A DNA stretch of 64,000 nucleotides, from NCBI GenBank assembly GCA_028023455.1, contig JAQFVV010000003.1:4030001-4094000 (forward strand), written 5' to 3'. Positions 23,298-60,540 of the stretch are shown here, one piece after another (within the stretch, counting starts at the first letter, position 1; each line of letters starts with the position of its first letter). The notes under the pieces were generated by a model. That model saw only the letters and a program-made list of their open reading frames with translations, ran no database searches and was not told the origin of the DNA. Position numbers and translations under genes: made by a program. This stretch comes from Epiperipatus broadwayi (taxonomy: Eukaryota; Animalia; Onychophora).

Positions 23298-23658
23298 ATG
23301 CAGGATTTGAACTCAGACTTTCACATGACCCACTACTCTCAATGCTACTAACATGGGTTTTGAACATTCCATCATCAGATTTTCAATAAAATGGAAGGCT
23401 GAAGAGATGTGGGTTAGAGTGGTTTGAAGCCTGTCCATTAAAGTGTGATGATTGGCTATCTTAATATAAAGCTGAGAACTGATTGTATATATGTGTGGAG
23501 ATAATAATCTAGACCAACTGATGATTGCTGGTTTAGCATGAAATATGTATATTGGTGATTATTTATCTTTTCAACATGTATGTGATCAGGTGGGTTAGCA
23601 ATATGAGATGACACTGAGAGTAGTGGGTTGTGTGAAAGTCTGAGTTCGAATCCCGCAT
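23298..23658 (+). mobile_element. HHR family 1 monomer (hammerhead plus tRNA-like A/B box) with an inverted 47-bp copy of its 3' end at the 5' side
   Basis: Homologous to 47200-47520; arms 23298-23344 and 23612-23658 are inverted; A-box-like TGATCAGGTGG at 23583, B-box GAGTTCGAATCCC at 23642-23654. Confidence 0.85.
23504..23562 (+). ncRNA. Minimal type-I hammerhead ribozyme (family 1, copy a)
   Basis: ATAATC-TAG-ACCAA-CTGATGA-TTGCT-GGTTT-AGCAT-GAAA-TATGTA-TA-TTGGT-GATTAT; core intact, base of stem II mismatched. Confidence 0.8.
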
Positions 23659-24599
23659 ATATACATATATTAACTTACATAATACCCTAACTTTAAATAA
23701 AATTGATAATTGACAACTTAACTCTTAAATAAAAGTTAATCACATTAAACTAATTTTTATTCCTTGCAGAAATTTTTTCAAGATGTCTACTACTTCCATG
23801 ATATAATTATTCGATAAGCATTTTCATTTAGTAGTCATCAATGAAATAACATAAATAACAATCTTATCATTTTTTATTCTGTATAGTACATATATCATAT
23901 TTTATAAAATGCAATTTTAAAAGTTTTAAATTACTAACAATAATCATTTTTCACCTAATTATACAGGTTCTTTAATTATGTTAATGTGTTTATCTGGATA
24001 TTCTTGTATATACAAAACTTTATTTGTAATTTTTACCATCTTCTAGAATTTGTATATTCCATTCACAATTCATTCTATGATTTGTATTTAAAAAATGATT
24101 ATCTAATCCTAATTTTGTGTCTTCTTATTTATCACTCTATCTTGTTCCCTTCTCTTTCTTATATAGTTTTCTCTGATTGATTCACATAAATCATATTATA
24201 ACAATCATAATTAATTTTATATACTATTCCCATTTTCCTTCTAATGCCATCTTTATTTTAGCATTACTTATCCATTTACTCTAAGTTCTAGTGATCTTTC
24301 AACCTACCTTTATCTTTTGGAAATTTTTGTTTATTCAGTTTTTTATGCACCTCTACTTCATAATATATCAAAACCGATTTTTTTATTTTCACCTAAATAT
24401 TTTTTACTATTTCATTTATTATTCATATCTTTAATATTTAAAATCCTTTTTTATATCTTTTCTTTCTTTAACAAAATTATTTTCAACTTCTACTTTTTGT
24501 ACGTTTGCTTTTTTTTTTTAAAAAAAGTTAACTTATTGTTTTAAAACCTTTTAGAGTTGCTATCTTTTGAACAATAGCTGATATAAATTAGATTTTTTT

Positions 24600-27058
24600 T
24601 TTAGTTCTGCAATATAAAAGTAGAGTAGGCTGTTTTGTTAAAAAAAGTACTTAGAAAAGAAGAAGTTAGCTAAAATAGACAATTATAGAGAGAGAATGAA
24701 ACTAAATAGTAAATTATTGGATGATATTAATAAAAGTGGAAGAGATGGGAGTAAAAAATTTTGGAATTACATTAAAAGGAGAAATTTAAGGGAGAGAGAG
24801 AGATAGTATTAGTGGATGAGGAGGGAATAGAGTGTAGCTCTAGAGAAGAATTAGAGAGAATATTGAATAGTTATGTAATGTATATAGAAAAGATGTTAGA
24901 TGTGAAGGACAGAGGGATAAAAAATATGAAAGCATATTGTAATGAGAATATTGCATTTACAGAAAATGAACTGAATGAGACAGGGAAGAAATTGAGAAGT
25001 GGTAAGGCAAGAGGATTAGATGGATGGGCAGCAGAGATGGTAATAAATTTGGGGCATAGGGCAAAAGTAAAGTTACTATCATGTTTTAATAAGATGGCAC
25101 AGAAGAGAGTTTTTCCAGGTAGTTGGAGTAATACAAGAGTAAGATTATTATTTAAAGGAAAAGGTAAGGATCATAGAAAGTTAAATAATTATAGATCAAT
25201 AGCAGTAACATCAGTTTTATATAAAGTTTTTTTCATATATGGTGGCTGGAAGTGTTGCAAAATGGATGGAAGAAAATAATGTAGGGGGGAAATGCAAGGA
25301 GGTTTTAGGTCAGATAGGCATATAGGAGATAGTTTATTTGTAGTTACACAACTTATAGATATGAGTAGAAATTCAGGTAGACAGTTATATATGAGTTTTA
25401 TAGATATAGAGAAGTCATATGATAGAGTGAATAGAAATAGATTATGGATAAGTTTAGCAAATCTGGGAATGGATGAAGCTTTAGTGGGTGTTATTAAGAA
25501 ATTATATGAAAATAATTACTATATGTATCAATTAGGGGATATAGAATCAGTTAAAGTTAAAAATGGAGTGGGGCTGAGGTAAGGATGCCCTATGTCACCT
25601 ATTTTGTTTGTGTTGTATTTGAGTGAAATGGAGAGAGCAATAGAAAGACTAGGAAGAGGGATAGAGATACCGTTAACAGGTAGCAAGAGAGTATATACAT
25701 TGTCCGATCTTTTTTTTGCAGATGATGTCTTTTTTTGTGCAGAAAGAAGAGAAGATGTGGAAGTTATGCTGAGGACATGCGCAAGGGTGGGTAAAGATAT
25801 GGGGATTAAATTTAGTGAAGAAAAATTAAATATAATGATGGTGAATACTGGGGAAAGAGAAGACAAAGATTTCTTATTGGGGGATATAAAGTTAAGTGTG
25901 GTGAATAGATATAGTTATTTGAGAATCATCTTGAGTAATAAGAAAAATTGCTTGGATGAATGGGAGAAAAAATTGATAAATGAAGCAAAGAAAAGAAAGG
26001 GATTGATAAAGAAATTAACAGTGTTTTCATATAATAAATATGATGTGGCTAGAATTGTATGGAAGGGAGGGGCAGTAGCAGGGTTAACATACAGCAATGA
26101 TGCATTATGTGTTAGGAAAGAGGTATTAGATTGCTTAGAAAAAGTACAACGGGAAGTAGAAAGACGTGCATTAGATGCTGAGGTGTGGACAGCAAAAGAG
26201 GCAATTCAAGGAGAAATGGGATGGTCAAGTTTTTATATGAGGGATGCAAAAAGCAAATTGAAAATGTTCAGTAGATTGCAGTTTATGGATAATAAAAGAA
26301 TAGCCAAAATAGTATTTAATTGGGTTACTAATAAAGGGCAGGCAATAAGATGGGTGAGAAAGGTAATGCGGTATGCAGAAGATTTGGATAAAGAAGTTAT
26401 GTCAGTATACTTGTACAAAAGATGGGATGATTGTGTTAGGAGGATTGTTGAGTGCTATAGTGGGAAGAAGTGGGATAGAAGAATAGATGCATTAATAAAG
26501 AATAGTGGGAGTTGGAGAGATGGAGAACTAGTATGGAGAGTAAAATGAGTTTAAATATATATAAAAGTAAATGGAACATTGGGTGTGCGTTAATTTATGA
26601 TAATAGTAAGGAAAGTAGTTTATTGTTTAAGGCTCGAACGGGATCTTTAGAAACAAGGGAATATACACGTAAATGGAAAAATATGGGTGATTTAGTCTGC
26701 AAGTTGTGTAAAGAAGGCATGGAAAATATTAGGCATCTGTTACTTCAATGTAAATGTTTGGAAGCAGAAAGAGTACCAATAATGAAATTATGGAAGGTTA
26801 AATATGAACAAAGTGATTTTACAGAAAGTGAGTTATTGGTTTTTATGCTAGGTTTGGGAAAAAATAAGGGGGATTTAGATATGAAGGTCATGGAGTTGAC
26901 AAAGATTATGTTGTGGAAATGGGATGGGGCAGATTATGGGAAAACTTAGGGTGGACAATGGAAAAGGAAGGTAAAGTGGCTAACAGGTTTCTCTGGGCAT
27001 AGCTGCTGAGAGATTCCTGACTCTGTTTAAGGAGAAGTCACAGTACATCACATCACAA
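24600..27058 (+). mobile_element. APE-type LINE ORF2 (tether, RT, C-terminal CCHC), few disablements, 5'-truncated; clade uncertain (CR1/L2 group suspected)
   Basis: KKFWNYIK, GKARGLDG, YRSIAVTSVLYKV, QGGFR, FIDIEKSYDRV, GLR*GCPMSPILF, FFADDV, YSYL, LLFKARTGSL, CKLC...HLLLQC; (CACAT)n tail. Confidence 0.95.
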
Positions 27059-38120: not shown

Positions 38121-39403
38121 GGTTCTCGTCGATGAGCAACCATATCCCACTGGATGGCGCAGTTATCACGCTAAAACTATAAAATATGATCATTCACGGG
38201 CTGTTAATTGTAATCATTTTGATGTGTTTTTGTAATGTGAAAATAAAAACAAAAAAAAATCGTCTTTTTAAAATATTATTTAATTTTAAATATTATTTTT
38301 TATTAACATATACAAATTAAATAATAATAATAATAATAATAATAAATGTAAAATAAAATAAAGAAAGTACAATTTGATTCATCTTTTTTAATTTTCTTTT
38401 TATTAGAAAAATCAATTTTCTATTGGAGATTTTTTTACTGGGGTTACGGCTTTTTTTTTTTGTTGTTTGCCGCTATTTTTTATTTCAAATAGAATCACAA
38501 CTAAAAATAAAATTTGTTACGGTTAGTTTTAGGGTTAGTTTTAGGGCTAGCTTTAGGGTTAGTTTAGGGTTAGTTTTAGGGTTAGTTTAGGGTTAGTTTT
38601 AGGGTTAGCTTTAGAGTTAGTTTTAGGGTTAGTTTAGGGTTAGTTTTAGGGTTAGGTTTATGGTTAAAATAAAAAATATCAAAATCGTATTTTTGTAAAT
38701 ATTTTTTTTTTACTAACATCTATAAAATAAATGATAACAATAAACGTAAACTATATTCAACAAAGTATAACAGTAGTCGGAGAAAAGAAAGAGAAACAAA
38801 AACTTTTTTAAACAATGACAAATATATATATAAAATGTTTATAATATATGCTTTTTATGACATTTAAAAAAAAAGTGCACAATTATACTTTTCTTACTGG
38901 ATATTTTTGTGTTAACACTCTTTTTTATTTCAAAAATATACACACTCGTGGAAATGTTACGAACAGTACGTTACTTGACATGTTACCTAATTCCAATTCA
39001 CTTTATACATATATCTCGTCAACATTTATTACTTAAAACTTCAGTACACTACGGTGTAAAAAGTCTGTTAATTATTACTTTACAAAATCTGAACATTTCA
39101 ATACTTTAAAATAAAAAAAAATCCAATGAAAATAACATTTCCATCCAATTAAAAAAAACACACCCTCTCCCCAAGCTGTAACCTTTTTATAAACTGTGCG
39201 AATTGGGAAAATGTATTTGTTGTGTAAACTTATATGCTGTACTGCAACGCGACATAGAGGCCTGCAATCTGTAGTACAACATAAAAGGTTGTATTGTAGA
39301 AAACACGGGTTCGAACGTGTCAGCCGCGGAAACGGCATTTTTATGTGTTTTAGCGCGAAAACAGCGCCATTCAGTGGGATATGTTGGTTCATCGATGACA
39401 ACC
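38121..39403. mobile_element. 1283-bp non-autonomous TIR element with GG termini and 8-bp TSD (Merlin-like)
   Basis: 57-bp TIRs at 38121-38177 and 39347-39403 match at 48/57; TSD ctgatttt at 38113-38120 and 39404-39411. Confidence 0.88.
38521..38665 (+). repeat. Telomere-like minisatellite, 11-12-bp unit (GGTTAGTTTTAG), inside the TIR element
   Basis: About 12 copies directly visible. Confidence 0.95.
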
Positions 39404-44190: not shown

Positions 44191-46525
44191 AATTTATAAG
44201 CATTGCATTTCAAATGAGCAACCTTTGATTACAGCAGTTTCTCAATAAATACATAAAAATCACTTTTATTAAATTATTTTTTTTAAATTTTTTTTAAATT
44301 CGATAGATATTATTTAAATACACATGATACTCTTCTTTAAATGTTCAACTTTCTTTATTGGTGCATAAGAACTTTTTTTTATTAAATCAACCATAAACTT
44401 TTTTTACTTTAAATACATAGTTGTAGACATTGAAAACAATATGTAAAGGATTTTCAGTATGCATTTTGGCTAAACAAGTTTCTTTGGTTCACCCAATTTA
44501 GTGTAAATTTTGAAAAATTAAAAAAAAAAACACTCTTATGCTGTATGTGTAAACCTATATTTCATATTCATTGTTCAATATTAATATTAGCATTGTACCA
44601 ATGTTTTGAATGGCTTTTAGTACACATCTTTCAGTAATAGAGGTCTTTCAGAGATATTGCAGAGATTAATAGCTAGTGGAAACCAATCAAATTACTGATA
44701 CAGTGCTAACACTATCAATGTCCAAATTTATACACAGATGAATCCAAAATGTTAAGTTCTCATCTATAATATATTTATATATTAATGAAATATAGAAATA
44801 AATGTAAAATAGGTCACAGCAACAATAATAAAAATAAAGAAGGAAGAATGGAGAAAAAAACAAAATAAGGAGCTCTCTTTATTACTTTTTATTAAATTAT
44901 TTACTGAGGCTACAGGAAATTAATCAAATACATTTCTATTTATGGATAAAGTGCAATCTGATTTAACTAAATTTTTTTAAATAGAAACCATTCAATACAT
45001 ATAGTAATAAAATAATTAAAACAATAATTAAAGCAATGAGATTATTGAAGAACTCGATTAAATTATAAATATCGTTTTTTTATTTTACACTACTGCAACC
45101 TACTTAAGTATGTTACAACTCAAGATTAATACTGTTAGAAAATTAAGTTAAATAAATTTTAACTTTTATTTATCTGGCATTTATTTTTATTTTTTTTATT
45201 AAACATATAATTTCATAATTAGCTATTTTTTATTTAAATAAAATAATAATTAATGGTAATGCTATCAATAATATATAATGATTTAAAAAATTTTTTTTAA
45301 ATATTTAATTCAGTACAGGATATTTAAATACCACTTTTTTTCTATAACTTACTTTATTTGTCTTATATTATTGAAAACTTTTTCAAACATTTTATTTTCA
45401 TATTCTTTTAAATCACATTTTTCTCTTATAAATCTATTATCTTACATCCTTGAACACTTCTAAATTTACTTTCTCGATTATCTTTTATAATAATAATATT
45501 ATCTTTCTCAAAAAAAAAAACCAACAACAAACAAATAACGAAACAAAAAACAAATAATAGTAAATTTATACATTAACAATAAATAGATGATATTTCTTTT
45601 TTACAATAATGTAATCCATTATAGAAGGTATGAATTTTTTTTTAATAAAACTTTCAATGAAATTCAAACATGCACATAAATAGCACAAATAATTAAAGTT
45701 ATAAATAAATATTAAGAATAAATCAAATATTTTTCTTTTCTTTAAAATAAAAAGCCATAATTACCATGGCAGTTTTGGGAACAATCTTTTAACTTGGATA
45801 TTAAATATTAGAACAAGAAAATCTGTAATAATACTCTCTTTAATAGTAGGTTTTATTTAATGTGGTGGAATTTAACAACAACATAAAGATAGGAAATTTT
45901 TTTTTTTTTGACATCAATATTAGTTTTCAGTTTTATTCAAATCATGAAAATCACTTTCAATAAAAACTTTTTGTTTTATCCCTTTTGATGCCAATAATTT
46001 ATATTAGATTATTTATTTCCATTTACAGCTTTATTTCTTTTATTTAAATAGATAATGCTAAATACTGAAATTCCAAATTATATTATTTTTATATATTCCA
46101 ATATTGAAAACTATATTATATTTGTCCACTCCCTTTTAAAATGCACTAGTTTTATTCAATAGTTTAAAATATATACACTGTATTTGATATTTGGTATAAT
46201 TCAATAGAGGATTAGTGATCCCATAACTAAATATTTCAGGATTGATTTCATCTAAATAGTACAAAATAGAATTAGTCCATATCAACTGAATGAAACTGTT
46301 AAAATGCTTGATATGCAACTAGAATGCTCAAACATCAAATGATTTTCTCAAGGCTGCATAACATATATATATTCTTCAAATATTTGAAAACCAGGCACTC
46401 TTCACAAACCTGGGAGCTTAATTGTAAGTATAGAGGATTTGAACTCAGATTTTTAAGCACCCTTCAACTATCCACACTATTTCATACAACTGATACACAT
46501 GACCACATACATGTAGAAAAGATTA

Positions 46526-46584
46526 ATAATCACCAATATATGTATTTCATACTAAACCAGCACTCATCAGTTGGTCCAGATTAT
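46526..46584 (-). ncRNA. Minimal type-I hammerhead ribozyme (family 1, copy b), core intact
   Basis: Minus strand ATAATC-TGG-ACCAA-CTGATGA-GTGCT-GGTTT-AGTAT-GAAA-TACATA-TA-TTGGT-GATTAT. Confidence 0.88.
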
Positions 46585-47012
46585 CATCTCCCACACACAC
46601 ATATATATATATATAATCAATGCTCAGTTTATATTAAGATAGAAAATCTTTATACTTTAATGGACAGGCTTCAATCCACTGCAACCTCCAACTTTTCAGC
46701 CATCCATATCATTGAAAATCTGATGATGAAAACTCAAATCCCATGCTGATGCTAATATTATTGCCATGACCATGTTAACCTGAAGTCACTCTGACCCCTC
46801 ATGCATAGGACAGTATCCATTAAATACATATAAGAGGGATGGACAGGATACAAGCTTGATATGTAAATATTTGAAAACCAGGCACTCTTCACAAACCTGG
46901 GAGCTTAATTGTAAGTATAGAGGATTTGAACTCAGATTTTCAAGCACCCTTCAACTATCCACACTATCTCATACAACTGATACACATGACCACATACATG
47001 TAGAAAAGATTA

Positions 47013-47086
47013 ATAATCACCAATATACGTATTTCATGCTAAACCAGCACTCATCAAACCAGCACTCATCAGTTGGTCCAGATTAT
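47013..47086 (-). ncRNA. Type-I hammerhead (family 1, copy c): intact core, palindromic stem III, 15-bp duplication in loop II
   Basis: Minus strand ACCAA-CTGATGA-GTGCT-(GGTTTGATGAGTGCTGGTTT)-AGCAT-GAAA-TACGTA-TA-TTGGT; ATACGTAT is self-complementary. Confidence 0.85.
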
Positions 47087-47366
47087 CATCTCCCACACAC
47101 ACACATATATATAATCAATGCTCAGTTTATATTAAGATAGAAAATCTTCATACTTTAATGGACAGGCTTCAATCCACTGCAACCTCTAACTTTTCAGCCA
47201 ATAATATTAGCATCAGCATGGGATTTGAGTTTTCATCATCAGATTTTCAATGATATGGATGGCTGAAAAGTTGGAGGTTGCAGTGGATTGAAGCCTGTCC
47301 ATTAAAGTATGAATATATTCTATCTTAATATAAACTGAACATTGATTATATATATGTGTGGAGATG

Positions 47367-47425
47367 ATAATCTGGACCAACAGATGAGTGCTGGTTTAGC
47401 ATGAAATATGTATATTGGTGATTAT
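47367..47425 (+). ncRNA. Type-I hammerhead (family 1, copy d), core mutated CAGATGA, probably inactive
   Basis: ATAATC-TGG-ACCAA-CAGATGA-GTGCT-GGTTT-AGCAT-GAAA-TATGTA-TA-TTGGT-GATTAT. Confidence 0.75.
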
Positions 47426-48599
47426 TAATCTTTTCTACATGTATGTGGTCATGTGTATCAGTTGTATGAGATAATGTGGATAGTTGAAGGGTGCTTGAAA
47501 ATCTGAGTTCAAATTCTCTATACTTATATATATTCTTCAATAATATATATACCCTATTAAATATTCTATAGATTTAACTTTCATAAATTATGAATAAAAA
47601 TTAATATTTTCATTAAGGCAGTGGCTTGATTGATATAAAGTTTACACACTAATAATAATTAGTAAGCAACGATAATCAATGACCCTCCCCCTCTTTAATT
47701 TCTTTTATATTGCACTGAATAAAATATGAATTAAGCTCCAGTTAATGAGATAAAATAATGCAAGGTCAAGGTAATGTAAATCAATTGATATGTTTTATTA
47801 TAACAAAGTATATAATTCATATATTACAGAGATGTAAAATATATTATTATAAATGACTGCATTTAAATCCAATTTATTAGCTTAAAGTATTAAAGTATAA
47901 CATACATAATAGCTAAATTTTAAATTATGACAAACTTCACAGGATTGCTTTCAAGGAAAATCCTTTCTAAAATCATTATTGTCTATACCAAGCAAAATTT
48001 GTTTTATTTTAAAGTGTAAAAGATAAAATACATATAATCATTAAATTCATTGCTTCTTTATCATCAATAAGCACATAAACAATTTCTATTATATATAACA
48101 TCATATATCTTATTTGACATCCCGCTTGCACTTAATTCATTTAATTACAGTGACCTTCTATTAGTATTTTTTATTAATATTTTTTAGCAAGTGAAAACTA
48201 ACAATAAATAAAGCTAATATATGCACAATATTGCAAAAATTAAAAACATTGATTACAAATTATGATCTTTAAATACATAGAGAACAATAAATTTTGAGAT
48301 GGCAATTCATCAAGAGAAAGAAATTTGCATATCATATGATTTATTGCGAGCTCTAATTTTATTCTTCTATTTTTGAAATATTTAGACAAATTAGTGAATG
48401 ATGTTTAAAAATATGTTTGCTGTAGTAACTGTGACCATTTAGTCAATGCAATGCTGTAATTGTAGATATCGAAATATATATTAAAAAAAGTGCTTATTCC
48501 TTGTTGGATAGAATTGTTGCATTACTGTTATTTAAAAACCAAAACTTTCTTTTTTAGAGATTTTAATGCATGTGATTTTTATACTTGCACTAGTAGGAA

Positions 48600-58579: not shown

Positions 58580-60540
58580 TTCAACCACACAAGCAGCTTT
58601 GGTTTTCAAAACTATAATGATAACTGTAAGAAATAAGAAAAAATATAGTCCTCTGGTCAAACAATTGGATATAGCATCAGCCTTTGACATTTGTACTGCT
58701 AAAGATGCTTGAAACCACAGATATCCCCAGATCCATGCTATATATAATAGCAAACCCATTGCTAAATTGTGAGCCACATATAACACTTAATGGTAGAAAT
58801 TCTCCCTCATTCTATCCCACCCAGTCACTATTACAAGGTTCACTTTTAAGCACCCTACTCTTTATTTTTTATATTAACCCCTTAATCAAGGAAATAAATC
58901 AATCCTTTGAAGGCATACAAATACCAGGGATCAACACAAAAAATAGCATGTTTGGCATATATGGACAATATCATGGTCTTTCTAACTTCTAAAACACAGA
59001 TACCACAGTTGAACAGGATAGTAGAAGAATATTTAGCCAATTATAGAATGAAGATAAATCCAGCAAAGTTTGCATCTTGGCATATATTCTCTGGAAAATC
59101 ATGTGGGTCCATATTTCAAGTGAAGCCAAATCCCTTTTTAGGTTTCCCATTTTATATGGGCACCACCGAAATGCGCTGTCACATACAAAACAAGCTCAAA
59201 GAGGATATCAAAAAAATAGCAAATTCATTAACAAAAGCATATCCATCAATATATGCAAAGACACAACTAATCAACAGGCTAATCATAATGAGAATAACAT
59301 ACTACATGCCAGTAATTGCTTTTTCTAAAGTTTTCATCTGGAAAATTAACTCCATAATCTGTAAACTTATGTGGACCAGAAAAACAATGGCCATATCAAT
59401 TAAAAACCTTAGCCAACCACTAATAAAAAATGACCTTGGCCTATCCAGCCTCAACATTTTTCACATACAAAACAAAAAAATACAATAATTGCCATAATTA
59501 ATCAATTTAAAAAATTAAAACATCTAATAAAAATAACATCTATTGATTGACCACCTCCAAAAGACTCATTCATTCAATCAGCAATATACCACTGCAATAC
59601 AATAGAAAAAATCCCCAACCAATGGACGGAAAAATATAAATATTGGGAAATCTATGAACTAATACAGAACCATACCACCAACAATGAAATATTACCACTA
59701 CTAAAAATAAACAATAAAGTATTAATCAAAAAATACAAGAAATGGGAGTTAGAGCCAAAATTTTTCAATTTCATCCTTAAAATAAACTTAGATGCCCTCC
59801 CAATCACATACTTTCTGGTCCACAGAAGACTACATAGAGACATGGATTCTTTATGCAGATTATGCCATCAGACTGAAGAAACCATCCAGCATTTAATTTA
59901 TCACTGCAAAGGTCTGGAATAAGTAAGAGTTATATTTTGCAACACATATAGGAGATACAAAACCATGATAGAACAAGTAATGATGGCATTCCAAAGTAAA
60001 ACAATACCACTGATCAGGACAGCAACTTTTGTTCTATATTCTTTATGGTGCACAAGATGTACTTTCCTAATTGGAAATAACACAAGGCAACATCCATCAA
60101 CTTTTCAACATCAGTTAATGCAAATACAAATGCGAGACAAATTGATAACAAGTCCAGACATCTATGCAACTACCTGGTCTCTGCTTAAACACAGAGCAGG
60201 GTTATAACATAATCAAAAATAAGATATACTAAGTAATATAAAGCTCTAAAAAAGAATCAAAACTAAAAATAACAAGTAATAAAACAAAAAAATAACAAAT
60301 AACAAGACAGAAAAGAACAGAGCCCACCCCTTCCCAGTAATCGCTTCAGTAACATCTGTGCACCTAATAACTAATCAAATATAACTGTTTATAATATTGA
60401 AAGACTTTATTTGATAATGAACAATTCTGTAACATTCAACTAGAACAATATAATATAAATATGTTATTTTGATTTTTGTAATAACAATTGTAACCTGGTT
60501 GTAACTGGAAAACAATAAAGTACCTTTTGAAACATGAAAC
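58580..60540 (+). mobile_element. 5'-truncated L1/Tx1-like LINE (RT to 3' UTR)
   Basis: QLDIASAFD, LLQGSLLSTLLFIFYINPL, LAYMDNIMV, LGFP, GLSSLNI, CRLCHQTEETIQHLIYHC; AATAAA at 60514-60519. Confidence 0.9.

Follow-up and report, generated by a model that had tools for sequence, protein, structure and literature searches.

What kind of repeat carries the hammerhead ribozymes (HHRs) found in a 64,000-nucleotide stretch of the genome of the onychophoran Epiperipatus broadwayi (assembly GCA_028023455.1, contig JAQFVV010000003.1, positions 4,030,001 to 4,094,000; the whole stretch is referred to as the window), and by which route did it reach its present place? The original prediction, made from the letters of the sequence, had described a tandem repeat that combines an HHR with a transfer RNA (tRNA)-type promoter for RNA polymerase III (Pol III), in the manner of a short interspersed element (SINE), and that would release a self-cleaved monomer of 487 nt. 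Our analysis indicates that the block at 46378-47526 is very probably a single retrotransposition of a high-copy non-coding HHR element, non-autonomous and mobilised in trans by a Penelope-like element (PLE), that is, a retrozyme without long terminal repeats (a non-LTR retrozyme). It is an element of an already known kind.

The block is one fold-back insertion of 1,149 bp, in which two 5'-truncated arms stand head to head within a direct repeat of 16 nt (Table 1). Unit positions are counted here on the minus strand, position 1 being the first base 3' of the predicted HHR cut (window 47023). The repeat has a GC content of 34.6%. The depth of assembled contigs from public runs is very high over the block and down to background outside its edges; these are Logan assembled contigs, for which the label "RNA" is a guess, and runs from nine organisms contain the repeat. 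Because of the two arms, the flanking 16-mer and the edges in depth, the locus is best described as a single fold-back insertion bounded by a target-site duplication, as opposed to a simple tandem array. The tandem repeat claimed originally therefore stands for the minus arm, in which units do follow each other head to tail with a period of 487 nt, while the locus as a whole is a fold-back with an inverted plus arm. The interval 46760-46865, which had been treated as a spacer, belongs to the unit, as it is present in other genomic copies. The tail of the window insertion contains a hairpin, CCAGG...CCTGG, followed by TTTT. Sub-threshold Rfam matches to mir-576, MIR477 and mir-205 at 47162-47298 were rejected, since they reflect merely the long hairpin formed by the centre of the fold-back.

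The copy number of the repeat was assessed in the assembly of 5.6 Gb, where the numbers of candidate places given for each family are lower bounds. The window family (family A), with its unit of 487 nt in the window, has at least 1,113 candidate places, which answers the check on copy number with a high-copy, dispersed family. A sister family (family B, e.g. L049:880-1380), with a period of 477 nt and approximately 80% identity to family A, has at least 4,402. Copies are dispersed over many contigs, as insertions of ~0.6-1.9 kb. The fold of the tail hairpin is weak in the window family (z -0.6) and stronger in the sister family (z -3.7). The window itself also holds a second insertion, of a sister family, at 23298-23666; its plus arm corresponds to approximately unit 279-477 followed by 1-102, an HHR motif is located at 23494-23573, and an inverted arm of ~50 nt occupies 23298-23346.

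The architecture was surveyed at 29 genomic loci besides the window. In nearly all of them the arms stand head to head, with inner (5') ends that vary and outer (3') ends that are fixed, either at about unit 112 (...CTATACTTA) or at about unit 159-168 (...CAAATATTT[ACATA]). One short and one long end are combined in 18 of the 19 complete fold-backs (P = 4e-5 under independent choice). Counted downstream from the predicted HHR cut, the short end is at 112 nt and the long end at ~160 nt, and the tail amounts to ~47-53 nt. At least 10 loci show a clear target duplication, 12-17 nt in length, and the DNA flanking the short ends is (TA)n or AT-rich. Every arm spans at least one uncut HHR site. The unit gave no Pfam matches, and its longest open reading frame (ORF) varies between copies from 61 to 166 codons, an inconsistency that bears out the original view of the ORFs as noise. 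The description of a non-coding, high-copy and mobile RNA-derived family, with a type-I HHR and a tiny stem III, likewise holds.

Table 1. Features of the fold-back insertion in the window (unit positions counted from the predicted hammerhead cut)
Feature	Window position	Strand	Content	Basis
Long arm	46378-47200	-	unit 322-487 + 1-487 + 1-159, ~1.7 units	BLAST of unit against locus, repeat finding
Short inverted arm	47199-47526	+	unit 261-487 + 1-112, ~0.7 unit; ends ...CTATACTTA	
Target-site duplication, left copy	46364-46379		TATATATATTCTTCAA; up to 2 nt possibly element end	
Target-site duplication, right copy	47525-47540		TATATATATTCTTCAA; 16-mer identical to 46364-46379	
Tail	46378-46424	-	unit 113-159; found at one insertion end only (ends 159 vs 112)	
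HHR copy 1	47002-47096	-	intact core; predicted cut 47024|47023	descriptor, covariance model R1
HHR copy 2	46515-46594	-	intact CUGAUGA/GAAA; predicted cut 46537|46536	descriptor, model R1 at 106 bits
HHR copy 3	47357-47436	+	core CAGATGA at 47381-47387 (U4->A); equivalent cut position 47414|47415	
A-box-like string	46983-46992, again 46496-46505	-	TGGTCATGTG; 3 mismatches to TRGCNNAGTGG	
B-box-like string	46922-46933, again 46435-46446	-	GAGTTCAAATCC; 2 mismatches to GGTTCGANNCC	
B-box-like string, third site	47505-47516	+	GAGTTCAAATTC	

Mobilisation by a PLE is proposed because the fold-back, the target duplication, the AT-rich target and the single tail match the published signature of these elements. 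PLE insertions consist of a partial tandem with an adjacent inverted and 5'-truncated copy and carry a tail of 30-40 bp at one end (Craig et al. 2021, PMC8557442), and the insertions described here show both features, namely a partial tandem next to an inverted copy truncated at its 5' end and a one-sided tail, together with an AT-rich target with a duplication. The likeness to PLEs with hammerheads in their pseudo-LTRs (pLTRs) (Cervera & de la Pena 2014, PMC4209133; PMC8557442; PMC11167929) covers the partial tandem with the inverted truncated copy, the tail at one end, AT-rich or (TA)n targets, an HHR ~100 nt upstream of the starts of reverse transcription and a tiny palindromic stem III. 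Unlike the element described here, PLEs carry an ORF for a reverse transcriptase (RT) with a GIY-YIG endonuclease, and their tail of 30-40 bp is shorter than the ~47-53 bp found in this family. Endonucleases of the PLE kind are abundant in the genome, with more than 10,000 GIY-YIG candidates, which speaks for a PLE as the mobiliser. Membership among the non-LTR retrozymes is in turn indicated by the ORF-less head-to-tail units, the type-I HHR in each of them and the low GC content. Earlier work has suggested or demonstrated that retrozymes derive from PLEs (PMC7229834), and a recent preprint argues from vertebrate data that they are non-autonomous PLE derivatives (Li, Clavereau & Pollet 2026, 10.64898/2026.07.22.740005).

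A mechanism can be proposed on this basis. Multimeric transcripts would be cut to unit length by the HHR, probably acting as a dimer, as the literature on such ribozymes suggests, and the unit-length RNAs might be circularised by tRNA ligase (PMC7229834). A PLE enzyme (RT/GIY-YIG endonuclease) acting in trans would recognise the module that extends from the hammerhead to the tail, and would nick an AT-rich target on both strands, the nicks being staggered by a distance that corresponds to the duplication of 12-17 nt. From each 3'-OH, synthesis of complementary DNA (cDNA) would then be primed at one or the other of two neighbouring internal sites, ~112 and ~160 nt past the HHR cut, and both cDNAs would extend towards the 5' end of the RNA and be joined in the centre via microhomology, thereby producing the fold-back. 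The PLE enzyme of the anole has been observed in vitro to cleave and extend both target strands (Frangieh et al. 2024, PMC11167929), and its two adjacent internal RT starts bracket the tail, ~90 nt downstream of the HHR cut (PMC11167929). Since all arms cross an uncut HHR site, the template RNA is uncleaved, religated or circular. For the same reason cleavage appears dispensable for insertion, as is also the case for the anole element in vitro (PMC11167929). A self-cleaved monomer of 487 nt, which the original prediction had envisaged as the mobile form, does not fit as the template of transposition, because all arms run through the uncut site and the fixed ends lie at 112 and ~160-165, away from the cut. 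The rule of one short and one long end, together with the clustering of the inner breakpoints, could constrain how a dimeric PLE enzyme couples its two primings.

The inner (5') ends of the arms are not uniformly distributed along the unit, as 26 of 49 fall within unit 250-330 (P ~1e-8). Eight of the inner ends are at unit 258-262, joined to differing partner arms, which suggests a discrete 5' end of the RNA or a strong RT stop at this position. Four to five arms start at unit 15-22, and this second group could also be explained by stalling of the RT at stem I of cleaved RNA. The ends of two of the 49 arms coincide exactly with the HHR cut (unit 1). The junctions themselves support the joining of cDNAs that meet head to head, since they contain microhomology; for example, an 11-nt string (TCAGATTTTCA) that occurs in both orientations in the unit (81-91 / 301-311) forms the junction of locus L007. 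At two distinct loci with different flanks, L002:944-2088 and L015:949-2085, the centre junction is identical (unit 252|310), and the two copies share 94% identity. This shared centre reflects either precise hot spots for junction formation or the copying of whole fold-backs.

The hammerhead itself was searched for with a descriptor composed of a 5-bp stem I, CUGANGA, a 4-bp stem II, GAAA, a short stem III and U-H. This descriptor matched exactly two sites of the window, with H17 at 47024 and 46537 of the minus strand, and gave no match in 50 shuffled windows. The two predicted cuts, and with them the spacing of 487 nt between them that had been reported before, were thus reproduced. All the listed parts of the ribozyme were found on the minus strand, namely stem Ib GATAATC/GATTAT, the UGG bulge, stem Ia ACCAA/TTGGT, the CUGAUGA core, GUGCU-GGUUU-AGCAU as stem and loop II, GAAA, a tiny stem III and AUA at the cleavage site. 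The statement that each unit carries an HHR has to be narrowed, as there are three copies of the motif, of which two have an intact core; the copies are unequal, and the core of the plus-arm copy is mutated. Because of its CAGAUGA core, the plus-arm copy is presumably dead; at 47382, nearly all contigs of other copies from the public runs carry a T. In copy 1, a duplication of 15 nt (47041-47071) extends loop II to 20 nt, and stem II of copy 2 has G-U pairs at both 10.1/11.1 and 10.3/11.3.

Both minus-strand copies possess the full core of a type-I hammerhead (CUGANGA/GAAA/U-H). When the proposed structure was followed through 78 distinct copies, 95.9% of 1,457 cells were paired over 19 pairs, compared with 29-59% in controls in which the structure was slid along the alignment. 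Compensatory changes in stems I and II, for which the original prediction had called, are few: four pairs were altered on both sides against 1.0 expected, a number that was reached in 6 of 500 shuffles. The support from pairing and covariation for the predicted helices is thus positive but thin, owing to the youth of the copies. In the comparison of family A with family B, no segment is better conserved than the HHR (94-95% identity versus 80% overall). The variation seen in ~85 copies from the genome (AGCACG/AGCATG/AGCACA and TACGTA/TATGTA/TACATA) has the pattern expected of CpG decay, and the copies that are CpG-intact have a G10.1-C11.1 pair and a palindromic stem III, AUACGUAU. Even in divergent copies stem III is palindromic (UACGUA, UGCA), and cofolding with ViennaRNA favoured the dimer. 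Hammerheads of PLEs have a short palindromic stem III and act as dimers (PMC6765202). Judged from its sequence and predicted fold, the HHR of the window family is of type I and of the dimer kind, with a tiny palindromic stem III. Another family of minimal HHRs was encountered in L031-L042 (centre ~1501; ...CTGAAGAGACCCATAGGTCGAAACCGGTC|TGGGG...); its stem III is the palindrome CCGG, and some of its copies pass the threshold of the Rfam Hammerhead_1 model, with up to 40.2 bits.

Several observations weigh against a functional, PLE-mobilised retrozyme. Among 30 loci with GIY-YIG sequences, none was an autonomous PLE with the HHR-to-tail module beside its ORF. The search for such a partner, which employed BLAST, nhmmer, tblastn and covariance model R1 and included 12 Rfam-HH1 loci in addition to the 30, returned further copies of the non-autonomous kind and, apart from these, a single homologous module in a degenerate state (L051), located ~0.9 kb upstream of a 5'-truncated endonuclease fragment on the same strand. 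The unit of 477-487 nt is somewhat above the 170-400 nt of reported animal retrozymes. Transcription, cleavage and circles received no support from the assembled contigs, which are of uncertain RNA or DNA nature and, having given no starts or ends, are neutral as to expression. In young copies, the HHR and the rest of the unit are conserved to the same degree, identity being uniform (~94-97%), as would be expected if dead copies decay neutrally. In most copies, including those in the window, G10.1-U11.1 takes the place of G-C, and the HHR of family B has a U at 10.1 (CTGATGATTGCT). Lastly, the proposed check with the Rfam Hammerhead_1 model turned out negative, with no call in the window at the gathering threshold and none on 3 kb at E<=10; the best CpG-intact genomic copy, L018:1461-1506, scored 15.2 bits against a threshold of 34, despite the fact that every core position was aligned by the model.

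Some of these points bear on the question of whether the ribozyme still works. The HHR-shaped segment might have been kept as a recognition module for the PLE protein, as a relic with little or no cleavage in vivo, and we regard this as rather unlikely, albeit with more in its favour than the other alternatives. In the anole PLE, the region of protein binding and RT start falls within the initial 172 nt of an ORF whose beginning lies in the HHR; mutation of the HHR leaves insertion normal, and RNA-seq reads that stop at the cut are absent (PMC11167929). The uncut sites within all arms of the present family are in line with such a role, as are the scarcity of arm ends at unit 1 and the fact that, in both families, most copies have G-U or U-U at positions 10.1 and 11.1. 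A mere relic would hardly be expected, however, to retain the full core (CUGAUGA, GAAA, UH) and three helices between families that are 20% divergent elsewhere, to show some compensatory changes in stems I and II, or to maintain a stem III palindrome in divergent copies; slow cleavage as dimers has moreover been reported for hammerheads of the PLE type (PMC6765202). As for an ordinary satellite or tandem repeat, non-mobile, spread by unequal crossing-over and containing an HHR as in newt satellite 2, the head-to-tail units with a period of 487 nt are what it would predict. The copies are, in contrast, dispersed and of ~0.6-1.9 kb; they contain inverted arms, stop at fixed outer positions and are flanked by target duplications, and this explanation is highly improbable.

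There remains the SINE-like reading, in which the element would be a retrozyme of the Sm-alpha type, with A and B boxes 3' of the cut that start Pol III and a released 487-nt monomer, retrotransposed with its own promoter. We consider it improbable. The strings TGGTCATGTG and GAGTTCAAATCC do lie where the original prediction had placed them and are spaced as in a tRNA, the sister copy at 23640-23652 retains a CpG-intact GAGTTCGAATCCC, which comes nearer to a genuine B box or T loop, and Sm-alpha offers a precedent for the logic (PMC6765202). The arms that start at unit 15-22 lie ~11 nt upstream of the putative A box and outnumber the ~0.5 expected, for a range that was chosen post hoc. The role as a promoter, on the other hand, finds no backing, since the matches are at chance level: pairs of A and B boxes occur at about background, the rest of the window having ~0.05 per 477 nt per strand, and the unit contains a second B-like site. 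The B-box-like string sits ~10 nt upstream of the short insertion end. Family B, which has the same architecture and ~4 times as many candidate places, is devoid of an A or B box, its B box being replaced by GTGCTCATATACC and its A box by a different sequence. On the sense strand, five T4 runs per unit (17, 147, 292, 306 and 378) lie between successive ribozymes, the bulk of the arm 5' ends is at unit 250-330 instead of ~20, and the insertion ends are away from the HHR cut. The insertions also differ from tRNA-derived SINEs in having no A-rich tail, as they end in ...CTATACTTA or ...CAAATATTT. With chance-level boxes, no match to a tRNA model, a box-less family B and the T4 runs, the label of a SINE-like element with a tRNA-type Pol III promoter is not upheld.

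The searches for a tRNA were negative with Rfam models, for sequences of 151-161 nt and for 3 kb at E<=10 as well as for the 64-kb window at the gathering threshold, and with ARAGORN at the default and 90% thresholds. At a threshold of 80%, ARAGORN reported a "tRNA" at unit 25-113; this call was rejected, because shuffled units match equally often (276 hits in 720 sequences). It is nevertheless conceivable, and in our view quite unlikely, that the ~90-nt segment between the HHR cut and the short end is a degenerate domain derived from a tRNA. Within the segment, GTTCGAATC resembles a T loop, and the sister copy at 23640-23652 has it in CpG-intact form; a closing helix of 7 bp would set the short RT start exactly at the position of a tRNA 3' end. 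If this were true, the telomerase-like RT would be recruited or positioned through a tRNA-like 3' handle, or else Pol III would start at about unit 20, and the latter case would amount to a hybrid of SINE and retrozyme outside flatworms. A hairpin just upstream of the short end, in the B-box region, forms a two-part fold with apparent compensatory changes in families A and B; we treat it as no more than a lead, its stability being no better than that of shuffles (z -0.5 to -1.75) and its pairing being broken by the hybrid sequence at 23298-23346.

The SINE-like elements Sm-alpha and Sj-alpha of Schistosoma were reportedly described by Ferbeyre and colleagues in 1998 and by Laha and colleagues in 2000. 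Stem Ia of Sm-alpha is ACCAG/CUGGU, similar to the ACCAA/UUGGU of the window element. The schistosome elements (PMC6765202) are also short non-coding repeats with a type-I HHR and a bulged stem I, whereas Sm-alpha has a functional Pol III promoter; in the onychophoran families the boxes are at chance level in one and absent from the other, and the footprint is of the PLE type. Newt satellite 2 and cricket pDo500 likewise contain an HHR whose stem III is unstable and which is presumed to work as a dimer (PMC6765202), but they form long satellite arrays, as opposed to dispersed short insertions with target duplications.

The closest known counterparts are the metazoan non-LTR retrozymes (Cervera & de la Pena 2020, PMC7229834), which are likewise non-coding, AT-rich, short head-to-tail repeats with a type-I HHR, present in thousands of dispersed copies with target duplications of more than 4 bp, and which co-exist with PLEs as their proposed mobilisers. 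Their units are ~170-400 nt in length, compared with 477-487 nt in the families described here. In addition, the minimal dimer type of HHR seen here is, according to the same study (PMC7229834), that of PLEs and amphibian retrozymes, while most invertebrate retrozymes have efficient monomeric ribozymes. The likeness to metazoan non-LTR retrozymes and to Penelope pLTRs that the original prediction had named is thus supported by the copies, their architecture, the HHR and the non-coding unit. A fold-back with one tail seems to be new for retrozymes in the literature, in so far as inverted copies in retrozymes are not mentioned in PMC7229834 and the preprint (10.64898/2026.07.22.740005) mentions no tails and uses "inverted" once. 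The locus provides a clean and bounded example of an animal HHR retrozyme family with the full insertion signature of a PLE, and it lends structural support to the proposal that retrozymes are non-autonomous PLE derivatives, which has so far come mainly from sequence similarity and co-occurrence.

Two further observations were made elsewhere in the window. Weak matches to RVT_1 are present in ORF fragments at 25592-26548 and 58907-59488, presumably decayed retrotransposons. An interstitial telomere-like array, (TTAGGGTTAGTT)n, occupies 38517-38666 with ~12.8 copies.

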